The notes beneath the pieces are model-generated. The model was not told where the DNA came from, searched no databases, and was given only the letters and a program-made list of their open reading frames with translations. A stretch of 64,000 nt of DNA from Amoebophrya sp. A120 (lineage: Eukaryota > Protista > Dinoflagellata), in assembly GCA_905178155.1 (NCBI GenBank), contig CAJINV010000001.1, positions 16,395,166 to 16,459,165 of the forward strand. Reading direction: 5' to 3'. The translations under genes were made by a program, and so were the position numbers. This document shows positions 2 through 48,773 of the stretch, piece by piece; position 1 is the first letter of the stretch; each line of letters begins with the position of its first letter.

Positions 2-721
2 GCTGAAATTTTGGGGCAGAGCGCTGCCGACGAAGCAGGTGGTGGCGGCAACGGCGAATCTGATGATTGCTTTTCCCTGTTCCGCGACGACGTTCTCCAG
101 AGACTGTTTCAGGCCGGAGCGTATTTGTCGCAGTACTATGCGCAAAAAGACACATTTCTAGCAGAAGAGAAGGTGCAAAGGCTGCGAGAGGCGAAATCGC
201 TTCAGAAGGCAGCGGAAGTGGCGGATCAAGAATGTATGCGATGGTGTCATCCGTCACTGCCCGCAGGCTGCATCACAGAGCATGAAGCAGTTCCGCTTGT
301 GAGAAGGGATCACGGAGTATCGGGTGGGAAGAATGGAAGTGGAGCAGCAAGAACCGCGAAGTGGTATGCCTTTCTAGGATCCGGATATCGAGACAACCCA
401 GTTTACAAAACGGCACTAGACCAGGGGTTCGCTCGGAGATTCGATGACGGCGCAGGGGTGAAGTTGCTGCAAAATCGGTTGCTGGAGCTCAAGGTTGTCG
501 GCAAACACTCTGGACTGAGCAGCAGCAACCGCACTTCGGCAAACTGCGACACGAGGCTGTACACGCAACAAGTGTACCACAACGAAGAAGACTGCAATTT
601 GATTATCTTCGACAAGGAAGGAAATCACGAGAAGATAGCGCGTGAAGTTCAGCACGCGGGGCTCAAGTGGATCCCTGCATTCTCAGCAACGCCTGAACCA
701 GAGCAAGAGGAAAGCGCGTGA
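2..721 (+). CDS. 3' part of a hypothetical protein; C-terminus weakly resembles a RelE/ParE-like nuclease fold
   Basis: Frame is open from the window start to TGA at 719-721. The C-terminal pattern GVKLLQNRLLELKV...DTRLY...LIIFDKEGNH is a resemblance only. Confidence 0.5.
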   Translation, partial: AEILGQSAADEAGGGGNGESDDCFSLFRDDVLQRLFQAGAYLSQYYAQKDTFLAEEKVQRLREAKSLQKAAEVADQECMRWCHPSLPAGCITEHEAVPLVRRDHGVSGGKNGSGAARTAKWYAFLGSGYRDNPVYKTALDQGFARRFDDGAGVKLLQNRLLELKVVGKHSGLSSSNRTSANCDTRLYTQQVYHNEEDCNLIIFDKEGNHEKIAREVQHAGLKWIPAFSATPEPEQEESA

Positions 722-1103
722 CGGTGCTATCAAGAACACTACACTACGAAGGGCCAGCACTTGCTCGACTTACATACGCAACCTAACGAAGAAGTCATTG
801 GTCATCCCCGTCCCTCCATTTTTAAAACCTGAAAGATAAACAGCATTGGAAAAGTACAAGAACCCCATTCAAGCGAACAACTCATTGCCTCTTCAACGCT
901 CTACACAGCTACATACATTCATTCTCCGTACTGATGTGGCTGCCTCGATGAAGCGGTAAATTGAGCCGCTTGTCCAGCTGAGTATCCTGTTGGATACCTG
1001 TCCTCTCACGTCTTGCACGAAATTGATGTCTTACCGTTACCTGTGCAATCTTTTAGAAGTCTTTTAGAAGCATACACAATTGAAAAGTGTCGTCATTTCG
1101 TAT

Positions 1104-1168
1104 CCGTCTTAGTCTTTTCGTCAGCCGTACTGCATGCCAAGCCGTCTTAGTCTTTTCGTCAGCCGTAC
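1104..1168. repeat. 27-bp direct repeat
   Basis: CCGTCTTAGTCTTTTCGTCAGCCGTAC at 1104-1130 and 1142-1168. Confidence 0.9.
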
Positions 1169-1347
1169 AGAGGTGTGGCCTGAGCCGACCGCTGTTTGTG
1201 AGAACGAGAGCGATTCTGAGAGCCGTACTGCGTCGTGCAGGCAAAAAAAGGTGAAGATGCAGCGGGAATAATGGTTGATTTTTTAATGAAAGAAATGAAA
1301 GAGGAGGATGAGAAGATTGTGCACCCCCTAGAGTCCAGAAGATCAGT

Positions 1348-3274
1348 ATGTGGCGCGTCTTCGCCCAGCAGTTTGTGGACGACCGAGATGCGGTCCGCGT
1401 GGAGGATTTCGTCAGTGTATTTGGCGCTCCGTCCAGCAGCGCTGTACCAGCGCACCACACGCACGCCGAAGTTGCGTCGCGGCTCAAAACGGGCAGCATG
1501 GCGCAGACGCGAACGGCCGCGGCGAAGATTGCTGGCGGGGCCACGAAATCGAGCGGGACCCCGTCGGAGGCAGAAGCGAAGAAGGCTACGACGCTGCTAG
1601 AGGTGAGACCGAATTTTCAGCCACGACTGGTGTGATGATTTACAAGCAAATCTTCATTGCCACTTCGACTTCAGCAATCATACTTATTCCTCTGGTGCGT
1701 GGCGGCCGGACAGGCTTTCGTTATTTTGATTTTCCGCGCCATTCAAAAAAAGAAGCAAACTGAACAGGACACTGAGGACGCGCCGGATCCTGAGTTCGCG
1801 AGGAAATTGGAACTCGCACAGGAATGGGAACGCATACAGATGGAAAAACGCCAAAAGCAAGCGAAGCAGGCGCGGGAGGGCAGAACAAACAAGAAGTCCA
1901 CTGGTGTTCGACCGGAAAAAAAGCAGGGTGCTATTAACCCTTCTTCAGGGGAGAGCAAAGTGGCGCAGGAACATCTCCTTGCTCTTCCGCCTGCAGGTAG
2001 TCCGGACGGCAGCAACGCATCGCAACAGCTGGTGTGTCGGAGCTCGAGCAGTATGTTGGTCAAAAGAAAGAAGATGGCCACCGCAGAAGTAGTGAGCGAA
2101 ATGTCCAATTGCCGAGGCGACGGTGGACCGTGGGAAACGCGCGACGCGGAAGGGGAGAGGCCCGACTCACAGACCAAGGCTGGGGCAAACATCATGGTGG
2201 GAGAACCGGAGCACCGCCTTAGTACTATTGCCGCGACTGAAGAACCTGCATCTACAGATGCGATCATTGAGCCGACACAGGAACACGACGTTGCCTCTGG
2301 AAGCACCTTTCTGTTGACTGCTGTGCCGCTCGACAACGGGGGCGCACCTACGGCGTTGCGTGCCGGGGGCAAAGTATTTTCAACTTGCACAGACGGACAT
2401 TTGTATTTGATCTGAACTTTCACCATTTATTTTTCAAATTGATCCGTGAATGGCGTCACAGAGATTCAATCATTTTTCTTTTTCACAGGGACCAGAGCAA
2501 AATCCGGACAAAAGTGTTGCTGGTATTGCCCGCGCAGCGCAGAGTGCTTCTTCATCAGCCGCTGGTAGAGAAAAGCAGTGCAGAGCGCCGCTCCCTCCTG
2601 CCGAAGTCGCCCCAGAAAAGCGAAACTTTCGAGGGAGGCGCACCTTCGCTACACGTAACAAAGCGGCCCCGGGCGGTACTACACGAAGAGGCGATCGGAG
2701 CCAAGGTGCGGCTTCCGCACCTTCCGTATCGCGGCTTGCTAGGACGCCAGCTGTTGGGTCACCGCGAAGCCAGCATCCCAAAGAACCAACGGAAGACTAC
2801 GATGCTGTGCAGGAGGATCAGATTACCTCCGGCGAAGATTTCTACGCGTATTTGAAGGCGCGGTCTGCAGCAGCTGGGCTGCGGAATGCCATCGACCCAG
2901 CAAATGGCGGCACTTCTAAAGGGACGGAAATCGTGCCCGCGGCGCCGCAAGAAAGGCACAAGATGAACATGTATTCCAACCAGGTGGTTGCGCACGGCTA
3001 CTTTCCGCAAGCTCCCAGTAGCACCAAGCACAAACTGCGCATGGTGCAGAAGCGAATTCTAAATCAGGCAGCAGGTGCAGTCCGGGCGTATCGACACGAA
3101 GTTCGCGAGCAGCTGCAAAAGGTGTTACGCGTTAGCGAGTTGTCCTACGACGATGACCGCAGCAAGGAAATTCTAAAGACTACGACGTTCACGCGCCAGA
3201 TCCAGGAATGGAATCGAATCCGAGCCATAGGAATGAAAACGGAAAAGCGATTTCTGGTGCCGCTGGTTCGGTGA
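1348..3274 (+). CDS. hypothetical low-complexity protein, probably 3 exons
   Basis: ORFs 1348-1602, ~1756-2373 and 2489-3274 can be joined in frame by GT-AG introns (GTGAG...AAG; GTATT...CACAG). No family recognised; start uncertain. Confidence 0.45.
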
Positions 3275-4067
3275 TTTGGAGGTGGGACATGGGAAATCCA
3301 GGGCGCCGTAAAATCTAAAGAATTTAGTTCATCCCCAGAGAGGCTGCTTTCTCACTCGTGGAAAACGAGAGAGGCATGACCGTTTCGAATAAGTACCCTT
3401 GGATGTGGCGTGAAATTTTAATTTGTATGATATCATTGCGCGCGTGCCTCCAGTGGACGGACACATGACCTGAGCAACTTCAGCTTTAAAAAAAAATCTA
3501 AATACAGATCCCGCTTTCACTGCCATGTGAGCGCCCACGCAATCGGAAATGTGCAGGAAGAAATGAGATAGCCATTCCATCTCTTTGTTGGTTCTACACG
3601 TTCCGACTCTAAGTTTAGATCCTTAAACTGATATTTGGCTTTGATGAACCGAAGATCATCTTGAATAATTTTGCTTCCAGTATCGATCCTTGGAAATATG
3701 CAGTGTGGACTAAAGGATCTCTCGACGAGGATGGCATTAAATTAACGCTCGAAGATCATACCGTGATTGCGAGATCGTGTCAAAGATGAAAAAGATCTTG
3801 CCTGAAATTTAGATTACGCTGGTCCGGAAAAATCTTCCAAACAGAAAAAGTGGATCTGAAACACAGCTGTGGATCCTGTCAAATCGGAAGCCGATCCGTT
3901 GAGGCGCTGTCTTTGATCTGCAAAAGTGGAAGAGCTCGATGCTTGAGTTCGAACAAAAACTTGACTTTCCGATATCAACGCTCTTCTCCTCCTTTTTTTT
4001 CGCACAGGGAACCGTGAGGCTTTAGATTAGAGTCGGTTTACAGCACTGCAACACCTCTTTTGGCAAG

Positions 4068-4811
4068 ATGGGTCTGGTCACCGTGCGCACGCGCAAGTTC
4101 AAGAACAACCCGCTCTTGGGCCGCAAGCAGTTCGTCATCGATGTTGTCCACCCGGGTGCGGCTAACGTGTCCAAGAAGGACATCACCGACAAAATCGCCA
4201 CCATGTACAAGGTATCACAGGGAAGCGCTAATTTAGATTTTTTGGTTTGGTGCGATGCTTTGAAACGCCGTGGTCCCTGGAAACGTCATTGGGTTTTCAT
4301 GAAGTTTTTGTTTACCTGATGTTGCGCATGACGAGTCTGCAATCTAAATCAGAAAAAAAAGTTGGTGACACCGAGAGATCTTTTTTACTTTCGAAAAACA
4401 GGTGAAGGACTCCAAGCAGATCTCCGTCTTCGGATTCCACACTGCCTTCGGCGGTGGCCGCTCCTCCGGAATGGGACTCATCTACGACTCCCTGGACAAG
4501 GTCAAGCAGTTCGAGCCGAAGTATAATCTTGTTACAACTAGGATTTTTTGATAGAGACACTTGCTCATGTTTCACACCTGCTTACGCATCTCCGTTTTGC
4601 ATAGCGTCCTCTTCTAAAACCGCATCTCATCCTCTACTTAATTGTTCCAAAACCGTATCGCAGGTTCCGCTGCAAGCGTCACGGCGTCGAGAAGCCGCAG
4701 AAGCGCAAGCGCATTGGACGCCGCAACTTGAAGAAGATGAAGCTCAACCTGCTCAAGGCCCCGCGTGGCAAGAAGAAGACCGAGATCAAGAAGACCGCTG
4801 GTGCTTTGTAA
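4068..4811 (+). CDS. RPS24: 40S ribosomal protein S24 (eS24), 3 exons
   Basis: [27 protein letters not shown]...[22 protein letters not shown]...FEPKFR. Exons 4068-4211, 4402-4520, 4664-4811 with GTAT...CAG introns. Confidence 0.97.
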
Positions 4812-5831
4812 GGTGTTGAACCTTCCAGAACGTCACGAACACATCCGTTGTCATTGAACTCGTGATCTGAACCCATTTGAACACGTAGCAGAGGTATTGA
4901 CCGTCTCGACACGCCGACTCTAAAAAACGAAGGAAGTAGAACAATGCGACGACGCATTATGTTGTGACTGCTTGTTGTTACCAGTGTGTTCAAAAAGCTT
5001 TGACGTATTCTCGCTCGCCCATGAAAGAATGATCTGTAAAGGGATGTGCCGCACCTTCTCAATTACGAGTGCGTAGTTCTAGGGGTCTGCTTCAGTGTAT
5101 CAAAATGTTTGTGCATTGGGAACTTTTTTAGAGATGAGTGCGAGAGGAGAGATACCTGGGTACAGATAGGAAAAAAGACATCTTTGGGTCGGTTTTTTCA
5201 CTCTCCCCATTACTCTAGAAAACGATATTTCTCACAGATAATTACTTTGCGCCGCTCGGGGGCAACATTGATGACAACATTCCTAGTCCGCCTATACATA
5301 GTTCTCCATCTTCATTTTTCGTCATGCACGCCAGACATAAAGGCCCTTCGGTGGCATTGGGGTTCCGCAGTGGAGTCTAAATCAATTGCGTTATCGGATT
5401 TGCTTTTATCGCGTTGCGATGTCCTCACCATGTCAACATACCGAACCGTATCAATAGTGCTAGTAGCAAGCTTGTTGAGAGGACAAAGAGAGACACAGAA
5501 AGACTTTAGCCGTATAAGCTAAGCGAGAAGCCTCAAAAAATCAAAATGGGAGTCTTGAGCAAATCCGGTGCTTGGGTCAGTTCCAAGGGATTGGAGGCCA
5601 GCGTGGCCATGAAAGAGGGCGTCGTTAGCGAATTGGAACGATGCCAGAAAGCCATCGCCAGTCTGCTGAAGGTGCTTTATGGCAGCTTGCTTGGTTTTAG
5701 TTTTGCACCATGACCGAAATTTCGTGCTCATTTTCTTGCATAAAGATGCGGAATTTCTTGTGTAATCCGTTCGATGATCTCTTTTCTAGGACTCATAGAC
5801 ACGATTCCAGAGAATACGTCCATTTCAGGTG

Positions 5832-7521
5832 ATGCCGTCCTTTCCGTGTGATGCCGTCGCGTCTGCTTGCGCGTCAGTGAAGGCAATATTAGACAAGATT
5901 CAGGAGATCGAGGTACTTACTAGAGTTTCATGTGCGGAATGAATGACGTAGGCATGCTGACGAGTTCTGTGCTTGTTCAACCAAATGTCTTGTTCGCCCA
6001 CTCATGCTCATTCATGATCCACGCAACGTGGCACATCTTTTTTTTCCACGAATTTGGCAGGCCGTCGCGTGGTCCAAGGAGAAGCTGTACGGGCTGTACA
6101 TCCTGCTGATTGGATCCATCGAAAGCATCATCGGGTAGAGTAGTGTTTGCGAATTAGTTCTATGCCTCATGTTGCATCATCCGTGTCGACAACACCGTGC
6201 AACCTAAAGACGGTAATGTGGCAGTCCCAAGTTCAGTTGTACACGAAACTGCCCAACTAGGTCCATTTCCCCGTTCGTCGTGCAGCCGATGTTGTGGGTG
6301 AAAGACCAGCTGATTGGCGTGTGCATGACCCTGACTACCTTCTGCTACACGGTGTTTGGCAAGATCGATGACTCCCTCGTGACGCCGATCGTTATGGCGG
6401 GAACCAACACGGGTTATCAAAGTGAAAAATCCCCCATCCCCATATCGGAAACGGAAGATGCGCGAACTTGTGATGCTGTATTTGAGTACACAAATCGACT
6501 TGTATTGCTAGAAGGCCAAGAGACGAAGCTGCGGCCTAAATTGCAGGCAATCTGTCATGATGTTTCCCACTTCCATTTGCCTCCTGTCATCCTGGAGCTG
6601 CAAGGCCTTCCCACGCCAACCAGCACTGCAGTCCGCATCTTTTCCCTTCTAGCATGACAAAGCTGATTTGTGGCCACAAATCTGCATCACAGATTTCCGT
6701 TTTGATATGGGGAGGGGGCATTTTTCATGGTAATGCGGGTGTGTGCTTGTACACCACCGCCAAGGACATTACCTACACGCAGTACGCAATGGTCAAGGAC
6801 GGGCTCGTCATGCCAGTGGTCTCCACCGTCAACGCAGCTGTGGTAAGTTGTTTTTCGTCGTGTGCACAAAATTGGTCCACCACAGCCATTGTTTGGTTTC
6901 TACTACCTCCAAGATGCAGCTCGGCGCAGCTTGGCTTCTGTCTCGTTCTTTTCTCAGCGACAGCGTCATGGTAAACAAAAACCGCGATACTTTATTTCCC
7001 CAGGTCTCCCCAGCGTACAGTGCGGCGTCTTGCGTCGCAAAGGGTGCCACGTCAAAAGCCATCAACGTCAGTGCCTGGGTGGATTCCAAGCTCAGTCTGG
7101 TCAGCATGATGGCAGCCGTTGTGGAGAAGTCCAAGAAGTTGGATGAGTGTGTCACCTCCGGTACACGAGATAGACCTTTTTGTTTTTTATGTTGCACTTG
7201 CATACAAGCGCACGTGCGCGACAGGCCCTTCATTTTTTTCTAGACGTTCTTAGCATCGTGAAGTAGAAAGTCAGCAATAAGAACCGCATCGCAGGTGCGA
7301 TTGAGAAGAAGTTGGTCCGCCCGGCGCTGGCAACTGCGACCTCCTTGGATTCCAAGTACCTCGGCGGCAGCACGCAGGACCTGATTAGCTCCACGGTGGT
7401 GCAGTTTCAGGAGGCGAAGGGCGTCCCGGTCGTCCCGGCGGTCACGGTGAAGCCAGTTGCCAACAAAACCGCCGCCGGCGCGCCTACCATCTCGCGTCCG
7501 CAGGTCGTGCGCCAGCACTAA
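5832..7521 (+). CDS. hypothetical protein with hydrophobic/amphipathic helices, ~6 exons
   Basis: GC3-rich exons ~5832-5911, 6061-6134, 6261-6414, 6741-6842, 7004-7160, 7295-7521 join in frame. One junction is the TIR element 6415-6735. Confidence 0.65.
6415..6735. mobile_element. introner-like TIR element in exon (TSD CGGGT)
   Basis: CGGGT at 6410-6414 and 6736-6740. Imperfect TIR (TGAAAAATCCCCCATCCCATATC..AAACGGAA / TTCCGTTTTGATATGGGGAGGGGGCATTTTTCA). Internal GCATGACAA. Removal with one TSD gives in-frame NTG|VCLY. Confidence 0.8.
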
Positions 7522-19688: not shown

Positions 19689-22600
19689 ATGATGCCGTCG
19701 TCTTCCTCGTCATCGTCCTCAGCCCTCATGAAGCGGCCACGCCCCCAATTCAATGACATATTTTCCGACCCATTCTTCAACGACGAGACTGCGGGCGCAC
19801 CCAAGCGACACAAAACCATCGGGGAACAGCTTCGCCGCCCCGAGCGGTGGATTTTCCCGGGAAGAAGGGACCCGCGCGTGGAAACCGAAAAGGGCAGCCA
19901 CGACTTCGAAGCAGCCCGGGATGGTTATCATGCGAGTGATGCCAAGGGAGAAGTGCTCGCGCGCTACGGTTTCAACCTCGCGCTACGATGCCACCCGCAT
20001 CCCTGCGCCATCTCGGAGACCCGCACCACGCACGTGGCGATTCCGGAGGACTTCGAGCTGCGTGTCCCTCGGGAATTGATGGAGCGCGGGGTTTTGTCGT
20101 CCACACAGATCGAGACCATCACCCTAGCGGCGCTACGGACGGCGGACGTAAAGGCGCCCGCGAGCACTGCTGTCGTGCTGTCCAACGGGAGCGACGCGGG
20201 CAATAAAGTTATGGTTTGTGTGATGAGGAGGCAACACGGGCCTAGCGAAGCGGCCCGGGGTGCCGAGGAGGGAACACAAAGCGGATTTTTATATAAATAG
20301 TATGCTCTGCCTCCGTCTGTCGCCACGGTCCCGGGAAGACCTTAAACTCGAGGCCATTCAGTTCACATTTTCAAGCTTTCATCTAGGCCTGCTGCCGTTT
20401 CGACACTCTTCACTTCAATCTTTCAGCTCGTCCAGCCTGGCTGGCCAACAATGTACCGCCCGTTTTCATGGCTGGCCAATGTACTGGCTGGTATCGGTTT
20501 CTGCCCGTTTTTCAGGGTATCAGTTTCTGCCCGTTTCAGGGTATCAGCTCCTGCCCGTTTCAGGGTGTCAGTTTCTGCCCGTTTCAGGGTATCAGTTTGT
20601 TTCTGCCCGTTGCAGGGCATCATTTTGTTTCTGCCCGTTATCAGGGTATCAGTTTCTGCCCGTTTCCGGGTATCAGTTTCTGCCCGTTTCAGGGTGTCAG
20701 TTTCTGCCCGTTTCAGGGTATCAGTTTGTTTCTGCCCGTTGCAGGGCATCAGCTTGTTTCTGCCCGTTTCAGGGTGTGAGTTTCTACCCGTTTCGGGGTA
20801 TCAGTTTCTGCCCGTTTCAGGGTGTCAGTTCCTGCCCGTTTCAGGGTATCAGTTTGCTTTTGCCCGTTGCAGGGCATCAGTATGTTTCTACCCGTTTCAG
20901 GGTATGAGTTTTCTACCCTTTTCAGGGCATTAGTTTGTTTTTGCCCGTTTCAGGGTATCAGTTTCATCTGCCCTTTTCAGGGTATAGACTTCTGCCTGCT
21001 TCAGGGTTATCACTCAGTTTCCGCTCGTCTCAGGGACCGACCTCTGCCCATTTCAGGGTATTGGCTTGTGCTCGCGTGAGGATATCTTTTTCGGCCCGTT
21101 TCTGGGGCCAGTTTTCTGCCCGAGTCAGGGTATCGTATCGGGCTTCTGTTCATCTTGTCGGGCTTGGGGAGCGCCTTCTGTTCATCTTGTCGGGCTTGCA
21201 GTAGCCGCACACAAATGCGCTACGTCTTTCAATGCCTTCCGAAGCCCCTTGCGATTGCTGACGCTGGCCTGCTGCTAGTCTGTAAATGTATCAATGGTCA
21301 AACTACCCCCCCTGCGGGCGTCTGAACTCGAGCCATTGGCAAGGCTCTACGGTACGAGTCTGCTTGCGTCTGCTCACCAGGCAGTATGAAAGACGCCTGG
21401 CGGATTCTCTTCACGTTCGATACTCGTCACGACGCCGGCCTCTGTGTGGGTCCTGTGTTTGCTGCTGCGGCACAAATACGGCGACCACCATTGGATGGTG
21501 TAGTGACAGCTCGTTCGCATTCCTCGTCTGCGCCGGCCTCAACATTTTCCACGCGGATCGTGTTGCGCAGCGAAGGTTTTTGCAGCATAGTGCAACACCT
21601 GCGCACTACATTTTGTTTCGTGTGGCCTGGGCTGTTCGATACTTTTGCCCTGAGGTTTTGAAGTTTCTTGCTTCGTGCCTGGTTCTATTGCCGTTGGTGG
21701 GCCTCGCTGCGGGCGCTTGCATCTAGTTGATGACCTTCGCGGAAATTGGGTATCTGCACCGTCTTGCCTGTTGATGTAGCGCCTGTGCGCCGTCTCTTGG
21801 AGGCCTGTTACCGACAGCATTCTTGTTGCTGTTCGTTCTATCACATTTCCTTTGGGTGTGTTTTTTTTTTTCAAGTTGTTAATGCTAGCATTCGCACACC
21901 CGTACCTGCGCTGACGCTGACCGAGGGCTTTATACACGTAGCCCGCGTCTGGTCCTGAAAAGCCCCTGTGGGTATTTCTGTCTCTCCCGTCGCCTGTGTG
22001 CAGATCATCAAATGGTCTTTCCTACCTTCATCTAGTGTCACACGGCTGCGGATGCGCTTGCCGCTTACCTGCTCCAGAGCCTGTTTCTCTTGTAAATTCT
22101 TTGGAAAGTTCCGTAGTGCGCGACGGGCCCTCAAATCTATTCCTCTTTTCTTTTTCTTTGTGCTTCTGTTGCTCCGTATTAAAGCGAAGTGATGCTTCTT
22201 TACTGCTATACATGTCGCAACCCGCGCTGTGGGCGCTCTTCGCTTTCATACTGCGCAACCTCGCACCAACGGGCCTCTCTTGCTCCGCCATCGGGGTTGT
22301 CAGCTTTTTCGGTCTGGCGACCCGCGTTCGCTAGCTCGGCCCGTTGTTGTCTCCGACAGATTATGTTATAAAGGCGCCCGCGAGCACTGCTGTCGTGCTG
22401 TCCAACGGGAGCGACGCGGGCAATAAACAAGTGGGTAAGCACAAGGGGCCGCTACAGATACAGCAAAAGTTACCTGCGACCGACACCCCGCGAGACAAAA
22501 ACTACACCAAAGGCTTTTTAATTGGCGAGGGCACGGGCTGCGGTAAAGGCCGCATGATTGTCGGAGTGATGCTGCACTACTGGAATCACGGACACCGGAG

Positions 22601-41100: not shown

Positions 41101-42678
41101 AACCATGACATTCTGGGATCTGAGGCAACAGGACGCCTCCTACTACATCGACGTTCCGGACGAGGAGCTTCTGGCACTAGACATGAGCCACAACGAAAAA
41201 TATTTGGTCACGGGAGGTAGAAGATTTCTTGACCTTTCACGTCGAATATCTCTCGGTGCAGAAGCACTTGTTCGCAGCAATGCAAATGATGCTGAAGATG
41301 CAGTACGAGGATAGAGAAGGCCGCAATCACAATGCATATCAGAATTTTACCAAATCCAAAGGTACTGGCCATACAGTGAAGCTTTGGGATCTGCGCAACG
41401 TCCAGCAGGGTCCGTTGAGCGTCGGCAGCGGACACAGCCGCGATATTGTCAGCGTGAAATTCGCGGAGGACGACAAGCAAGCGATTTCCGCCGCGAAAGA
41501 CCATTCGATCCTCGTACTAAGTGGAAAAATGTCTGCAGCAAAAAAAATCAAAATTTTTGGTAGTGCAGTTTGTGCCCTTCTCTTCTCGCCCGGACTGCAG
41601 CGCGCTGGTGCGTGCCGTGGCCTCCATGCTGGGGAACTTGACCGAGGTGCTGTACTCCATTCCTGCTGCGTCGTTTGGTCGAAGCTCCCGCGCGAGCTTG
41701 AAGGCCCCCTAGTAGTCAGCCCAAGCGTTCGTCCTCATCCTTCTCGTTCTGGAAGTAAGTAGTTCCTTTGCCCATGCTCCTGTCCAGCATGCCGCAACCC
41801 TCAGCCAGGTATTTGGGCGTGAAGCCCCTCCCGCCAAAAGTGGCAATTTGTAATGCGCGTTTCGCATTACAAATGGCCATCTTTTGTGACCCGTCTTGGG
41901 CTCGCTCTCCGGGCCGGGTCACAAATCTGAGCCCCTGCATCAGCAGAATTGGGTGCTGTGAAGGTTCAGATTTGTGATGCCAAAAGAGGCTCCGCCAAAA
42001 ACGTCTGCACCTCGACTATGAGGTCCCCAAGTGGAGGCGCAGACGTTTTTGGCGAGGGGGGGGGAAAGTGAGGCTGATAGCCCGCGTTTGTCTGCGCCGC
42101 CAAAAACGTCTGCACCTCCGAAATTGGCCTCCAGATGAGGTGTCTTCGGACACCTCTTCGGAGTCCTCCCGAGTCGCGGACCTTCGGGGCGACAAATTGC
42201 GGCCGCCCTTTTCGCAGGGCCCCGACCTGTATCGGGCTGAATTTGCAGGCAAAAGCCTGCGATTTGAGCTCATCCCCGAGTCGGCCTCCTCCGAGGCCGC
42301 GAGGTTTGAACCAAAAGCGAGCCTCTTGGTCAGCAAATTCAACCCATTCTCAAACAAGACATGTACGCGGTAAATCGTCAGGAATCAGGAGGGGGTGTGG
42401 GAACTTGAAGAACTACAACTGCGAACCCGGGTGGACGACGCCCACCGATACCGACGTACCTAGTCCCCCGGTGGCTGAGTTGTCTCCTCTGCTTCGTCCG
42501 CCGAGGCCTTGCCGGAATACCTGGCCTACCCATTTCCTTGATTTTGTTTCATTGTGAAAAAAAATAAACATACAAGCAGGCGCCCGAAAAGGTAGGATAC
42601 AAAAATTTTGATTTTTTTAGCTGCAGACATTTTTCAGTTTAGTACCTCGTGTGGAACATTTACGACAAGTCAGCGTGA
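38169..42678 (+). CDS. cilia/flagella WD40 protein, CFAP52 (WDR16)-like
   Basis: MELEHAIG start, FFHGHDDFVTCVAVSHDGRMIASGQ, YLYAGTTTGD, multiple WD repeats, C-terminal DHSILVWNIY. About 11 exons, three of the junctions being TIR elements. Confidence 0.8.
39565..39830. mobile_element. introner-like TIR element in exon (TSD CGTGT)
   Basis: Perfect 27-bp TIR TATCCTGAGTAAAAACGTACCCACACC. CGTGT at 39560-39564 and 39831-39835. Several GCATGACAA motifs. Removal restores FRVKTK. Confidence 0.95.
40528..40726. mobile_element. introner-like TIR element in a WD motif
   Basis: TATCGCACAGAAGATTAC / GTAATCTTCAGTATGATA. Flanks GTGGC/GTAGG are each one change from GTGGG. Removal restores LRVWETK. Confidence 0.8.
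41515..42644. mobile_element. 1.13-kb non-autonomous TIR element in the last coding region of the WD40 gene (TSD CCTCG)
   Basis: ~44-bp TIR TACTAAGTGGAAAAATGTCTGCAGCAAAAAAAATCAAAATTTT / AAAATTTTGATTTTTTTAGCTGCAGACATTTTTCAGTTTAGTA. CCTCG at 41510-41514 and 42645-42649. Internal CGCCAAAAACGTCTGCACCTC repeats. Confidence 0.92.
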
Positions 42679-42749
42679 AATTCGCGGAGGACGACAAGCA
42701 AGCGATTTCCGCCGCGAAAGACCATTCCATCCTTGTTTGGAACATTTAC

Positions 42750-43682
42750 TTCAAAAAAGAAAATTTAAGAGCAGGACGATAATTCAGTTTTTTGGGTGTG
42801 TGTCCACAGCGAGCCAGCTAGCCAAAAAAACGGGCGAGAACCCGCACCATACGCGACCAACATGCCGCGAGTCGTGCCTCCTCGCAAAGTCGCGATCGAC
42901 CGACGCACAGCTCACAGTGAGGGAGGGGGGGGCGCCCATTCACCGCTTGAAGGGGCGCAAGGGGCTCCCGGTAGAGTAAGTCGCGTCGCAGTATCGTTGG
43001 CCCAAATGTGGCGAGCGTCACAGCCGGCAACTTTGATCGCGCGGCCTGCAGGTCTCGGCTCAGGACCAGGAGTCTCCTTTCACCCTTTGCCGCGCAAAGG
43101 GTGAAAAGGGACTGTGGATAGCAAGGCACGACGCAGTACCTTGAGCCAAAAGTGCTCAAGGTCTGCGTCCGCGACTTCGATCGAGTGGTCCACAAGTCTC
43201 AACTCCGGGCTTTTTCTCCCCTTTGCCTCGCGAAGGGTGAAAAGGGACTCAGGATAGGAAGTCACGACGCAGTACCTTGAGCCAAAAGCGCTCAAGGTCC
43301 ACGTGTGTGACATTGGTCGATTGGCACACAAGTCTCAATTAGGAGCCTCCTTGCTTTCTTTTCCCCGCGAAGGGTGAAAAGGGACTCCAGGTAGCAAGTA
43401 GCGGCGTAGTACCTTGAGCCAATTGTGCTACGCTGCGCGACCCGCATCGTTGTGCGCTTGATCCACAAGTCTCAATTAAGTACTTTCGCAAGAAATCGTC
43501 TGCCTTCTCCAGCATTCCGTGGTGAGTAAAGTTCTACAGCTAGTATTTTGAATCAGGTGAACTAGATCTGTAGAACGTTAAACACCATGGCGCGCTGCGC
43601 CTGGCGCTTTTGCAGCGCCATCACTTGCAATAAAATCCTCGCGGTTGGCGTGGGCGCCGATCGCGATGATTTTCTGGTGACC
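42750..43682. mobile_element. 933-bp insertion carrying SL-like tandem units, flanked by a 76-bp duplication of the WD40 gene 3' end
   Basis: Identical 76-bp repeat at 42674-42749 and 43683-43758. Three ~136-bp internal units. No clear TIR. Confidence 0.75.
43104..43475 (-). ncRNA. three tandem spliced-leader (DinoSL)-like RNA gene units
   Basis: Minus-strand leaders ACCTTGAGCACTTTTGGCTCAAG, ACCTTGAGCGCTTTTGGCTCAAG and AGCGTAGCACAATTGGCTCAAG, each followed by a 32-nt segment starting GTAC and then TTTT. Compare DinoSL DCCGTAGCCATTTTGGCTCAAG. Expression not shown. Confidence 0.65.
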
Positions 43683-44641
43683 CGTGAAATTCGCGGAGGA
43701 CGACAAGCAAGCGATTTCCGCCGCGAAAGACCATTCCATCCTTGTTTGGAACATTTACGACACGTAAAGTCCGAGGCGGTCGGAATCTGGATGGCGCTCG
43801 CAGTCTCGCAACGATAATCTGTAGCTCGAAAGAGTCTTCTCAGTCTTCTTTTTCAATTCAAAAGCACGTAGTGGGTAGCTCAACAACAAAGTTTTAATCA
43901 GATCAAACTAGTATACGAAGAGATTCTTGTACTTGTAGTGGATATTTACGTAGCACATTATTACCTGGCTCGATGTAGAAGGACCAGGCGAGGACTTTCG
44001 CGTTCAGCTAGAAATGCCTGGACATCATTTTCATTTTGTTACTAGAGCCTTGCACAAGGAGCAGACTGTCTTCCTGGACCGATTCTCAAGTGCTCATCGA
44101 ATAGATGAAGAAGGATGTCAGTTGTTTTTTGCACTTGCAGTTGCACGACAGACGAAAACACAATGCGCGGGAAAAGATGAGACTGCAGCACCACACAAAT
44201 GTCCAACTTTTCGATTGCTATCGATCTAGTTGCGAGCCGGTCGCTGCAGGAAGGTGGTCTGGTGTTTTGATTTCTTTGCTTTTGTACAGCATGCAAGGTT
44301 CGAGCTCGCAGAGCCAGAAGCAGCGTAGCAGGTAGAGGATCACTTGGTCTTCCTGTTTCCGACGGCTTTAAAGCTGCCCGTACCATAGCAAAGCCTATTT
44401 AGCTACCCTGAGTAGAAGCAGAGTTTTTTTCCCAATTTGTTTTCATGAAAACAGAATTTTTGGTAAGTTGTTGCAGCGAAGGCACAAGAATAATGGTTCG
44501 CGGCGTGCGGTGAGCTACTTTTCATTTGCCAGACAGACCAACCGCGACATCATGCCGTCGGCGGGGGCCGTCGCTCTGCTTGGCGCACCTCGAGGCCCCA
44601 TTGCAGTACGTATCTGACTAGCCTTCTAGGTCGTCATCGCC

Positions 44642-47010
44642 ATGGAGGGCCTCAAGGACCCATGTGGTGACCGGGTGGTGAAAAGCCTGCCACCCCCACC
44701 TGCAAAGCCGCTGGACGAAGCTTTGCTTTATCCGGAAAACGGAGACAAAAAGAAACCTGATGTTGCAGTGTTGAAAAAGCACCTGCTGAGGGAGGGCAAG
44801 CTCTCCAAGCAAACGCTTTTGGATATAATAGCCCGGGTTACCGAGATCTACAGGAGCGAACCGACGTTGGTATCATTTTGGTTCCATCGACCCAGATACT
44901 TCTGCCGCTCAAGTGAACCTGGACCTGCTTCGTGTCTTTGAGCAGATCGCGTGCATGTCTTGCCTACACCCACATTGTTTTCCGATGAAGTACTTAACAA
45001 ACAAACTGCAGACTCAAATTCTTTTGCCCCCAAGGTGAAAGTCCGAGACCCGATAACAGTTGTTGGGGACATTCATGGACAATTTTACGACTTTGTCAAA
45101 ATGCTGGACGTTGGCGGCGATCCTATGACGACGCAGACCCAGTACCTGTTTCTCGGTACATGCCTACTAGCAGAACTGCTGTTGAAGTAGTTGAATTCAT
45201 TCATTGCTTTGTTAGCATGGTTTGCCTTCCACGAAACACGCCTGGTGCCGCGGTTCAAAGCAATCCTTCTGCAAGAAAATCATCCAAAAAGGTGACTACG
45301 TCGATCGCGGTTCCTACGCAATAGAGGTGCTCATGGTGCTGTTTTGCACGAAGATTACCCACCCGAAACGAATATGGATGTTGCGGGGCAATCACGAATG
45401 CAGGCAGATGTCGGCGTTTTTCAACTTTCGGGACGAGTGCGAGTACGCTTTTTTTGCGACGATTTTATTAGTACAAAACTGTATCTTTATTATTCTATTC
45501 TTTAGAAGTTTTGCTCATGCGCATCCATAGTATCCTTTTTGCTGCAACATCGCTACCGCTACATTCAGGTCGAAGTATGACACGACCGTCTACAATGCGT
45601 TCATGGAATGTTTCGACGCCCTCCCGCTCGCGTGCTTGATAAATGGCAAGTTTCTGGGCGTGCACGGGGGGATTTCGCCCGATCTCGTTTCCCTGAAGCA
45701 GCTTGACCGCGTGGATCGGTTTGCGGAGCCGCCCAGGGAAGGAGTGCTGTGCGACTTGATTTGGGCCGACCCCATGGACGAAGCCAACGAACCGAATGCC
45801 AAGGACGTGTTTGTTAAAAACGAAGTCCGCGGCTGCAGCTGGTTCTTTACTTACGAGGCGGCCACGCAGTTCCTGTACAAAAACAGTCTGCTCAGCGTCA
45901 TAAGAGCGCACGAAGCGCAGATAGAAGGGTAAGCACGTTTCACTTTCAGACGCTCGTAATAAAACCGTCTGTGCACCCTCGATGCACTTCTTGTTTTGCT
46001 GTGTCAAGCACTTCTTCTAAAGAATTGTTTTTCGTTTGCACGATTATCAGGTACAAGATGCACAAGACGAATCAAGCGACCGGCTTCCCGACGGTGATCA
46101 CGATTTTCAGTGCTCCGAACTATTGCGACGTGTACAACAACAAGGGCGCTATACTGAAATTCGACAACAACACACTGAATATCCTGCAGTTCAACTTTAG
46201 CCAGCATCCGTATCACCTACCGAACTTCATGGACGTGTTCACCTGGTCGCTGCCCTTTGTGGTCGAAAAGGTCACGGAAATGCTGTACTACATGCTGCAG
46301 CCCAGTAGCGACCAGGAAGCAGAGCGCGAAATCGACGAGAAAGAGCTGCCGCCGGCGGTACACAAGATCGTGCGAGACAGCCTGTCGATGGAGCAGAACG
46401 AAGCAGTAAATATCTTTGATACTTGTTTGTCATGTGGCTCTTCCAGTGCCGCACAACTTCGAATCAAAAACAGTGTGCACCTCTAGCTCCTTGCGGCATT
46501 GCATCTCGAAAGGATAAGTTTTGAAAAAGTAGCAGTCTATCACAAAAATCTCAGATCAACCTCGCCGCGCGCCTGGCAGAGGGCCTGGAGGGCCATGACG
46601 CATCGCCAGGAGGCACGAAAAAGGCTGTCATGCCAACAAACGAGCAACTGGATGCGAGCGAAAGGCACGACCGGTTGCGCAAGAAAGTGAAGACGATAGC
46701 AAGGATGGCGAGTACGATGATTTTGTTGCACTTTTTCAACACAGAAGATCATGGACCACGAGTGATCAGATTCGTTCCTACTTGTTCATCAAAAATTTTC
46801 AACGCTTCTCCAAAAAATTATATAACAGGGATGTTCAAGACGCTACGACAGGAGAATGAGGCTGTGATTCGCTTGAAAGGCGTTTGCCCTGGGCACAGGC
46901 TGCCGCCCGGACTGCTACTGGCTGGGAAGAGCGGACTGGCGACAGAACTGGAGAGGTTCGATCACGCAAGATCGGTCGATTTGCGCAACGAACTGCGTCC
47001 TGACACCTAG
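44642..47010 (+). CDS. CNA: calcineurin (PP2B) catalytic subunit A
   Basis: [68 protein letters not shown]-terminal autoinhibitory [15 protein letters not shown]. Six GT-AG introns. Confidence 0.97.
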
Positions 47011-47016
47011 AATAAG

Positions 47017-48042
47017 CTAACATAGAATCTCGACGTGACCGGGCCGGTCACGTCCGCCCGGCCGGCCGGGCGGCCGGACCGTGACCGGGGGTTGTCCCTG
47101 GTCAGCCCACATCCTGGAGCCAGTCGCTCGTGGGGGTAGGAGGTGACGGCACTGCACCTTGAGCCAAAGTTGTGCAGTGGTAGAATGCACCTCGCGGCAC
47201 CTTGGAGCCCTAGGCCTTAATATGTAACGCGCCCGAGCGCGAGCGCATGCCCATAGAGATGGACCTGCTGCAGCAAGTAGCAGTGACTTGAAGTCTGCAT
47301 CGAGGGCGCAACGCCGTGACTTGCTACCCTCCGTCCCTTTTTACCCCTCGCGCGCACGCAGAGTGAAAAGTTAGTGGGAGGATGGAGTCGCGGCACTGTG
47401 CCTTGAGCCAAAGTCGTCCAGTGGTACAGTGCGGCTCACTGAACCTCGGAGCCACGACTTCGTTCTGGGCTCAATTGCACAGCGCCGTGACTACAGGCCT
47501 CAATATGCACCTGAAAGCCACAGGTCTCAATATGCGACGCGTCGTCCGAGCTCAGGCGGATCCAAGTGGCAACGCCACGAAGTCTGCAGCGAGACACTTT
47601 TGGCCCAAGGTGCAACGCGGTGAATTGCTGGCCCCAGCTCCTTTTCTCCGTTTGCGCGCAAGCAGAGTCGGGGAAACGGACGGGGGCGCAGGAGTCGCAG
47701 CCACGTGCGTGGGGGTTGGGTTGGGGTGGGTGGGCGGGGTGTTTCGAGCGGTTGCCAGCGGTGTCTCGCTGCTGTAGCTACTGCTACTGCATAAATAAGT
47801 CCGCCCCCGCAATGCTAGCTACTTTGCAGGAGCGTGAGGCCCAGCCAGGCTTTCGATTGTAGGCACTGCGGGTGGAGCTGGAGCCGGAGCGGCTCTGCTC
47901 CGCGCACCACATAAAACTAACATCTGGCGCAGCCCGCGCCCGGATAGCAGCCGCGGGACATAGTCTACCCCCGGTCACGGTCCGGCCGGCCGGCCGGCCG
48001 GGTGGACGTGACCTCCCCGGTCACGTCGAGATTCTCTGTTAG
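47017..48042. mobile_element. ~1.03-kb TIR element with SL-like units, flanked by a 68-bp duplication of the calcineurin 3' end
   Basis: ~76-bp TIRs at 47017-47092 and 47967-48042 (CTAACATAGAATCTCGACGTGACCGGG... / ...CCGGTCACGTCGAGATTCTCTGTTAG). Identical 68-bp repeat at 46943-47010 and 48050-48117, including the stop codon. Confidence 0.92.
47126..47645. ncRNA. three diverged SL-like units (two on the minus strand, one on the plus strand)
   Basis: Minus: CTTTGGCTCAAG|GTGC ending at 47158 and CTTTGGCTCAAG|GCAC ending at 47402. Plus: AGCGAGACACTTTTGGCCCAAG|GTGC at 47588-47609. The latter two keep the 32-nt spacing to TTTT. Confidence 0.55.
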
Positions 48043-48773
48043 AACCTCTCAGAACTGGAGAGGTTCGATCACGCAAGATCGGTCGATTTGCGCAACGAAC
48101 TGCGTCCTGACACCTAGTCGGGAGCGGGAAGCAGCGGCGTCTGCTTCGAGTAGGAGTTCTGCGTGATATCGCTGATTTTTAGTGCCCTCAACGTGAAACC
48201 AACCACGGTGTTACGCTTTTTGATTTTACCAACCACGCAACTGAGCGTTGTTCAATATCAATTCATCTATTACTTACAAGAACAGCAAAGTAGGCTTGAA
48301 AGTCGAGTATAGTAGAGTTCTTTGTCATTTTTCCAAATATTACCAACAGAATTTTTTACTTGTATTTCGTCCAGAACAGACAAAGATGTGCTTTCCTCCT
48401 TGTCAATTGACAAGAAACATGAAGAAACAAGTCATGCTGGCCTAAGTGCCATTTCCGGCGAGCCAGTCGTGACAATATTGTGCCACATAACATCATAGGT
48501 TCTTGTTTCGTCGTGATAGCTGTTCGCCTAGTAACAGAGCTTGTGTTTGTAGTTTCGCGGTAATGTTATGTTTGCGTTTTGGCAGATAATTGTTGCCATT
48601 TTTTCAAAGTTGTCTGTGTTCAGGGAGGAGTTATTTTTTTGTCGTGTCTAGCAATGCAAATCGAGCGCGAGTGATCAGAGCGACCTTCAGCTTTTCCAGC
48701 CTTGAAGTGGGTCGTCGCAAAAGTTTCCTCATAGAGTCTGACTTTCAACTAGTATGCTCGCATCGATCCATTC

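Follow-up and report, generated by a model that had tools for sequence, protein, structure and literature searches.

What are short units with the layout of spliced-leader (SL) RNA genes doing inside mobile insertions of Amoebophrya sp. A120, and do they provide leaders for its messenger RNAs (mRNAs)? The question was raised by a 64-kb stretch of the 115,520,608-base assembly (C1:16395166-16459165; hereafter the window, whose own positions are used below), in which six such units lie in two insertions. A sequence-only reading of this DNA had proposed that the units, carried by a transposon with terminal inverted repeats (TIRs), form a mobile and diversifying supply of trans-splicing donors. 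Our analysis leads to a different answer. It appears to us, at a probability of roughly 0.6, that the units are diverged paralogues of the SL gene which travel as passengers in young insertions and are not a noticeable source of mRNA leaders.

The units stand out clearly from the surrounding DNA. The motif TTGGCYCAAGG occurs six times in the 64 kb, compared to an expectation of 0.09, and none of 100 shuffled sequences reached six. All six sites (on the minus strand 43139, 43275, 43412, 47157 and 47401; on the plus strand 47600) are confined to two insertions, insertion 1 at 42750-43682 and insertion 2 at 47011-48049. When the coordinates of exon, donor, box and T-run were checked base by base, the features on which the sequence-only reading was built, namely one architecture in six units, its positions and spacings and a best match of 17/22 to the dinoflagellate leader (DinoSL), were all recovered. 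The exons are 22 nt long; five end in TTGGCTCAAG and the sixth, in unit C4, reads TTGGCCCAAG. Five donors are GT (GTA in A1-A3, GTG in C3 and C4) and one is GC (C2). TTTT begins 32 nt past the donor in five of the six, the exception being the unit with its exon at 47158-47179, which is without a T-run. None of the window units matches the full 22-nt DinoSL exon DCCGTAGCCATTTTGGCTCAAG, as the identities are 14-17/22. The divergence is in exon bases 1-11; the last 10 or 11 bases are kept in five units, and C4 keeps 10/11. The putative Sm-like site, for which the reference is AUUUUGG, reads CTTTTGG in A1, A2 and C4, AATTGG in A3 and CTTTGG in C2 and C3.

Insertion 1 (family A, 933 nt, minus strand) has no terminal inverted repeats and holds a tandem array of four units, all on the minus strand, of which A3, A2 and A1 are intact. 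Unit A3 (43377-43475) consists of a box at 43463-43475, a 28-nt spacer, the exon at 43413-43434 (17/22), a GT donor and TTTT at 43377-43380. The same order is found in A2 (43240-43338; box 43326-43338, ending in GTGT; exon 43276-43297, 16/22; GT; TTTT 43240-43243) and A1 (43104-43202; box 43190-43202; exon 43140-43161, 16/22; GT; TTTT 43104-43107). The box of these three units reads TTGAGACTTGTG(G/T) and each ends 50 nt before the donor. The units are spaced 136 and 137 nt apart, with inter-unit identities of 85% and 70%. A hairpin lies over the T-run of A1 (43071-43113, 20-nt arms, 90% complementary), its partner arm being the remnant of a convergent unit. Within A1, exon bases 1-8 pair with the last seven exon bases and the first intron base. 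The fourth unit, A0 (42959-43055, minus strand), is decayed and has lost its donor and T-run (profile E 1e-4).

The interior of insertion 2 (family C, 1039 nt, plus strand) is composed of units in alternating orientation. Unit C3 (47131-47221, minus strand) has an exon at 47158-47179 (14/22), a GT donor and a degenerate box, TTAAGGCCTAGGG, at 47208-47220, and the 3' part of its intron is gone together with the T-run. An exon-less remnant at 47274-47351 (plus strand) keeps the intron and T-run, and its leader is deleted. Unit C2 (47357-47461, minus strand; exon 47402-47423, 14/22; GC donor; TTTT 47366-47369) and unit C4 (47553-47655, plus strand; exon 47588-47609, 15/22; GT donor; TTTT 47642-47645) both have decayed boxes. 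A profile built from all units recovered the six together with the two dead ones (42959-43055, minus; 47274-47351, plus). Scanned against Rfam with E values up to 10 allowed, the region 42000-48600 showed no SL family, and the matches were weak and unrelated.

Are these units derived from the SL gene, or do they merely resemble it? In the Dinozoa, SL genes are recognized by a G|GTA boundary and by a C-T4-7 tract closing the intron (PMC9399869), and one complete DinoSL gene per Amoebophrya genome has been reported (Farhat et al. 2021, PMC7789003). In the 115.5-Mb genome we found a single exact DinoSL exon followed by a GT donor and an SL intron, at C11:2800775. Its intron spans GTACCATATCGTGACTTGCTAC to CAGTCCCTTTTCACCC, and the window units carry the same intron with substitutions. 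Because this intron is common to the canonical gene, the units must be SL-gene homologues and not look-alike motifs. Variation of the SL intron in Amoebophrya is already on record (PMC3101222). In blastn, the alignments between the canonical unit of a relative and the window units span 55-66 nt at 82-87% identity; in its exon and intron, this canonical unit is identical to the C11 gene. By their sequence, therefore, the window units are homologues or paralogues of the SL RNA gene across the exon, donor, intron and T-run. Among 32 units tallied, 28 have a GT donor and four have GC, and TTTT stands 32 nt after the donor in 16 units overall. The assembly also holds more than 50 exact DinoSL 21-mers. 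Ten exact DinoSL copies were read with their flanks; none was followed by GT or by an SL intron, and these copies are therefore relict leaders on retroposed RNAs.

A second line of evidence is the upstream box. In all 19 units with a recognizable box (TTGAGACTTGTGG), exactly 50 nt separate the end of the box from the donor, so that the fixed spacing noticed in the window holds in other copies. The pattern TTGAGACTTGTGK has 30 genome matches, compared to two for the reversed control, and 22 of the 30 are located at SL-like units. One of the 19 box-bearing units is the canonical SL gene on a related contig, JACKZZ010011090.1. This contig came from a scan of metagenome collections, which also returned one unrelated contig, and belongs to a relative that is 88-89% identical in alignable spacers; another metagenome scan with a box plus exon pattern gave 0 matches. 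On its minus strand (573-7170) it holds the small-subunit (SSU), 5.8S and large-subunit (LSU) ribosomal RNA (rRNA) genes, two 5S genes, ATTGAGACTAGTGG, a 28-nt spacer and the canonical exon and intron. A stretch of 69 nt is 100% identical between this SL gene and the C11 gene, and the flanks are unalignable. As read from this contig, a bona fide canonical SL gene has the box upstream of it, at -41 to -29. We thus regard the box as a candidate SL promoter element, for which the relative's gene is the best available support. The earlier description of the units as SL-gene units with a promoter box and T-run agrees with both the shared canonical intron and the equally placed box in the relative. 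A genome search with the Rfam U2 model, on the question whether the box is a general promoter of small nuclear RNA (snRNA) genes, scored 47 of 1665 candidates and gave nothing, as was also the case in control genomes. No upstream box at a fixed 28-nt distance was described in the DinoSL literature that we searched.

The surroundings of the two canonical genes deserve a note. In the relative, a tandem array of ~60-nt repeats comes after the SL gene. At C11 the box is absent; a fragment of another unit precedes the gene, and tRNA-like repeats surround it (tRNA, transfer RNA). These repeats, seen on the minus strand of C11:2799275-2802292 at ~900-1650, have the T-loop motif GGTTCGAATCC and terminal T-runs, and ARAGORN called no tRNA at the locus despite this resemblance. 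Also upstream of the C11 SL gene, a chimeric sequence joins a tRNA-like 5' half to the 3' end of an SL unit.

If the units are SL-gene paralogues, their pattern of divergence can tell what was once maintained. In a gap-free alignment of ten unit types anchored on the donor, the mean pairwise identity was 0.64 in the box, 0.39 in the spacer, 0.42 in exon bases 1-11 and 0.96 in exon bases 12-22. In three successive segments of the intron it was 0.66, 0.70 and 0.81, and downstream it was 0.44. Had captured genes decayed neutrally, exon bases 1-11 could not differ at 6-9 positions while bases 12-22 stayed nearly intact and all distances remained free of insertions and deletions; this argues for past selection on the unit lineage. 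To judge from the alignment, the lineage must have been selected for the box, the spacing, the Sm-like site, the donor and the intron, with the identity of the 5' half of the leader left free.

What, then, carries the units? Both insertions are very young. Insertion 1 is flanked by a 76-nt duplication (42674-42749 / 43683-43758) that is 100% identical, and terminal inverted repeats are absent from it. Insertion 2 is bounded by TIRs (47017-47092 / 47967-48042; 76 nt, 93% complementary) and flanked by a perfect 68-nt duplication (46943-47010 / 48050-48117), whose target was the end of a phosphatase reading frame, stop codon included. At the junction of the right end and the target there is a 7-nt filler, AACCTCT (48043-48049). 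Its reverse complement, AGAGGTT, stands in the target nine bases further downstream, and this match suggests snap-back templated synthesis at the junction.

The host gene (44642-47010, plus strand) encodes a calcineurin-like phosphatase of the PPP family in seven exons, and its six GT..AG introns were confirmed by RNA contigs. The contigs of run X3 skip all six of these introns and so derive from RNA. One of the contigs (depth 187) joins 47016 to 48048 and skips 47017-48047, with CT..CT ends and an ambiguity of 2 nt. In the phosphatase mRNA contig the 68-nt duplication is still present twice, and what is gone is precisely the inverted-repeat element. The RNA depth was 0 across 47088-48022, compared to 120-390 in the flanks. 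Insertion 2 behaves as a non-canonical intron, like the introners of Amoebophrya. Non-canonical introns are numerous in this genus, in which U1 snRNA was undetected (Farhat et al. 2021, PMC7789003); the introner elements are a subset of them, whose ends carry inverted repeats and whose borders are spanned by short direct repeats (PMC7789003). For insertion 1, a second contig joins 42778 to 43821 and skips 42779-43820, which is most of the insertion. CGATAAT stands at both borders, and the ends are AT..CT on the plus strand or AG..AT on the minus strand. The depth over insertion 1 was 4-5x, compared to 223-363x in the flanks, in contigs of poly(A) type that are uninformative on small RNAs. Three raw-read RNA runs under the same species label (X10-X12, 2026) had 0 reads on 5.6 kb that included the well-expressed phosphatase gene; another strain or species is their probable source.

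The window is only one of many places where such carriers occur. A profile census covering 16 loci counted 56 SL-gene units or fragments, both numbers being lower bounds for the genome; they belong to three repeat families. Family A consists of insertion 1 and C1:1854404-1855335, the only other copy in the genome, which is 98% identical and without a flank duplication. Family B is at least 1.5 kb long, has two divergent units and is present in six or more copies of ~96% identity; flank duplications, of 30-42 nt, are seen in four of six copies, the copies are truncated at differing 5' points, and they have a common 3' end, a 20-nt tandem repeat. Upstream of the SL unit pair of family B there is a palindrome with 111-nt arms, formed by two nested fold-back repeats (L029 805-1036). 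In family C, the type of insertion 2, all six copies stand between flank duplications, which are 22-68 nt long and are accompanied by 0-34 nt of filler. The 3' ends of the copies are at the terminus of the right inverted repeat in five of six and ~20 nt short in one, and the 5' ends are at query positions 1, 1, 1, 145, 241 and 376.

The inverted repeats of insertion 2 also bound dozens of elements of 410-490 bp. The five of these short relatives that we read have 3-bp target duplications and no SL motif. The transposon carrier which the sequence-only reading proposed was right in part: the carriers are mobile or duplicated DNA and insertion 2 does have TIRs, but insertion 1 has none and the SL-bearing copies of family C do not show the 3-bp duplications of their short TIR relatives. 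Because of their long duplications, filler and 5' truncation, compared to the 3-bp duplications of the SL-free relatives, the SL-bearing copies are not ordinary TIR transposons. Target-primed reverse transcription leaves traces of just this kind: duplications that are long and differ in length, filler bases, and copies shortened at the 5' end whose 3' end is constant. From these marks we infer that the carriers spread by a retroposition-like process. The template of the full-length family C copies begins and ends at the element termini, as would be the case if an intron RNA had been excised and then reverse-transcribed, although this is speculation. A box-bearing unit as the 5' end of the elements was also considered and was rejected, since the copies start far upstream of any unit.

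Taken together, we propose the following course of events. Each unit follows the plan of a whole gene: the box, at -41 to -29, is separated by 28 nt of spacer from a 22-nt exon with the 3' half of DinoSL, after which come a G|GT donor and the SL intron, and the C-TTTT-C tract would terminate an RNA of ~58 nt. Such a lineage probably consisted of transcription-competent SL-like genes, and the intact A1-A3 may still be so, whereas decay has set in for many copies, above all in insertion 2. Selection would have kept the box, the spacing, the exon 3' half and the intron and released exon bases 1-11. Families carrying the units would then have spread, leaving target duplications of 22-76 nt, filler bases and 5'-truncated copies, and at least insertion 2 is afterwards removed from the host mRNA as an introner.

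The alternative that survives best is that the units function as diversified SL RNA genes, that their variant leaders become trans-spliced to mRNAs, and that mobile elements thereby spread new donors. We consider this unlikely, at clearly lower odds than the passenger explanation, but it has several points in its favor. The gene architecture is complete and the spacing exact, and a free 5' half with the rest conserved is what would be expected if the Sm-like site, donor and intron suffice. Diversified leaders are also known in the Perkinsozoa, the sister group (PMC9399869).

The use of the leaders was examined through relict leaders fixed in the genome, which serve as a proxy for the leaders on retroposed mRNAs. 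The pattern N11-TTTGGCTCAAG followed by a non-G base had 80 genome matches, compared to 41 for the control. About 33 of the relict leaders are full canonical and about nine are 5'-truncated canonical, and none of these ~42 has a variant 5' half. Targeted patterns of a variant leader followed by a non-G base gave 0 matches and one unrelated match. The notion of a supply of trans-splicing donors, as put forward from the sequence alone, is therefore not borne out, with no variant among ~42 canonical relict leaders and several units dead. Dead units, including an exon-less one, stand in the same arrays as the others; insertion 2 has decayed boxes, a unit without a T-run and another without an exon. 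Purifying selection within family B was also unconvincing, as 14 of 226 sites (6.2%) were variable in the units, which is not clearly below the 65 of 770 (8.4%) elsewhere in the shared region, and several of the unit changes sit at CG dinucleotides. No conserved secondary structure was seen: RNAalifold gave no consensus for 14 units (-0.1), and folds of single sequences had a mean z-score of -0.3.

Leaders from canonical genes may also be in ample supply. In the relative the canonical gene adjoins the rRNA and 5S genes, a type of region that is usually tandem and collapsed in assemblies; canonical SL copies may therefore be under-assembled in A120, and the canonical supply need not be limiting. 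The same collapse may explain the reports of a single SL gene. The relict canonical leaders start with T (~19), C (~7) or A (~6), and the C11 gene encodes A at position 1. This mismatch means either that the assembly lacks further canonical genes or that the first base was misread at the cap in reverse transcription. Some relict leaders belong to repeats. In one family (L002, L005, L007 and L022) the full DinoSL is joined directly to (A/G)CTTT and continues with TTGTTGCCTGAGATCC; by its structure, this is a leader-headed retroposed family. L003 and L004 have another DinoSL-headed body in common.

A further possibility is that the SL-like modules serve the elements themselves, either as internal promoters and terminators for the template or as Sm-binding or donor-like aids to splicing. 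To us this is more doubtful still. It would fit with the presence of units in three unrelated carrier families, with the long duplications of the SL-bearing copies in the TIR family as opposed to 3 bp in their SL-free relatives, and with the removal of insertion 2 from mRNA in a genus where U1 was reported to be undetected (Farhat et al. 2021). The conservation of the units over a long divergence would also suit selection at the level of the element. However, the copies start far upstream and the units lie on both strands, so the units do not set the 5' end of the template. Insertion 2 is removed from RNA at its inverted-repeat ends and not at the SL donors. Insertions with long duplications exist without SL units: at 20208-22368 there are 2161 nt between a perfect 59-nt duplication (20149-20207 / 22369-22427), which hold tandem repeats of 24-28 nt and belong to the same long-duplication class as insertions 1 and 2. 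The variable leaders, compared by eye with the intron borders, showed no complementarity. A guide-RNA role, with the variable leader complementary to the intron borders of its own element, was considered in this connection and dropped, as nothing of the kind was seen by eye.

That the units are subterminal transposase-binding repeats, or resemble DinoSL by chance, is very improbable. They are repeated inside a TIR element and partly palindromic, but their homology to the canonical gene takes in its exon, its donor, ~45 nt of its intron and its T-run, the box precedes the canonical gene beside 5S and rRNA in the relative, insertion 1 and family B are without such TIRs, and the short TIR members are without the motif.

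Several points weigh against the passenger explanation. The modular conservation implies long-term selection on variants and fits a real function better than passenger status. The 5' halves of A1, A2, A3 and C3 pair with their own donor regions more than shuffled sequences do (p 0.002-0.03), and the combined p over the ten unit types is 0.004; hairpins of this kind speak for working donors. The relict census leaves room, at 95% confidence, for a fraction f of variants up to roughly 7% among the leaders on retroposed RNAs. At C11, the one canonical gene in the assembly is without the box, and the box-bearing units might be the better-promoted genes in A120. The removal of insertion 2 from RNA rests on one assembled contig. 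Retroposition is deduced from insertion signatures; there is no poly(A), families A and C being tailless, and no partner reverse transcriptase was identified, none having been sought. It is conceivable, though improbable in our view, that the variant units are live, and that mobile introns of a parasite with no detected U1 snRNA spread their own SL-derived small RNAs as alternative leaders or as element-specific splicing helpers. Selection would in that case maintain promoter, Sm-like site, donor and intron and let the 11 nt at the 5' end vary.

Elsewhere in the window, the stretch 42000-42131 has an inverted repeat (42033-42054 / 42098-42119; 22-nt arms, 95% complementary) and direct repeats. 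It gave just weak microRNA-like Rfam matches and looks like another fold-back element of the introner type.

The locus has a wider meaning. One SL gene per genome had been reported (PMC7789003), as against the 56 or more SL-gene units and fragments counted here. Three oddities of the A120 genome become linked, namely SL trans-splicing, introners and insertions with target duplications of 22-76 nt. If the variant units are expressed, mobile DNA is spreading RNA-processing genes; if they are not, the units are a dated fossil record of SL-gene turnover and useful markers of introner movement. In the literature searched, no account of mobile elements that contain SL-gene units came to light.

Compared to known DinoSL genes, the units are alike in the 22-nt exon ending in TTTTGGCTCAAG, the G|GTA donor, the short intron with a C-T4 tract and the predicted RNA of ~58 nt (Zhang et al. 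2007, 2009, 2011, PMC3101222; PMC9399869). They are also alike in their tandem short repeats, of 136-137 nt here, and in the linkage to 5S in the relative. They differ in that exon bases 1-11 are replaced (14-17/22 overall), in that they are found within mobile insertions and introns and on both strands instead of in arrays of their own, and in that the relict-leader proxy gives no sign of leader use. Insertion 2 is like the introners of Amoebophrya in its terminal inverted repeats, its removal from mRNA at non-canonical borders, the 2-nt direct repeat and the absence of coding capacity (PMC7789003; Gozashti et al. 2022/2025, PMC9860276, PMC12130899). Unlike them, it carries SL units, has a duplication of 68 nt instead of 3-8 nt, and is placed directly after a stop codon, whereas introners lie between coding exons.

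In other organisms, small-RNA genes have been multiplied through retroelements. Examples are the Cassandra terminal-repeat retrotransposons in miniature (TRIMs) with 5S in their long terminal repeats (LTRs), the retro-pseudogenes of U6 (PMC4476161) and other snRNAs, and SINEs (short interspersed elements) that descend from tRNA, 5S, 7SL or snRNA. Our units resemble these in that a small RNA gene is multiplied in mobile DNA and that variable duplications and 5' truncation point to a reverse transcriptase. Here, however, the promoter box and spacer were copied too, and the units are internal passengers in either orientation and not the 5' head of the element. No retroelement derived from an SL RNA turned up in our literature searches. 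A link between SL genes and retroelements does exist in the trypanosomatids, in which the retrotransposons SLACS, CZAR and CRE1 insert into SL genes. The relation found in A120 is the reverse, as here the SL units sit inside the elements.

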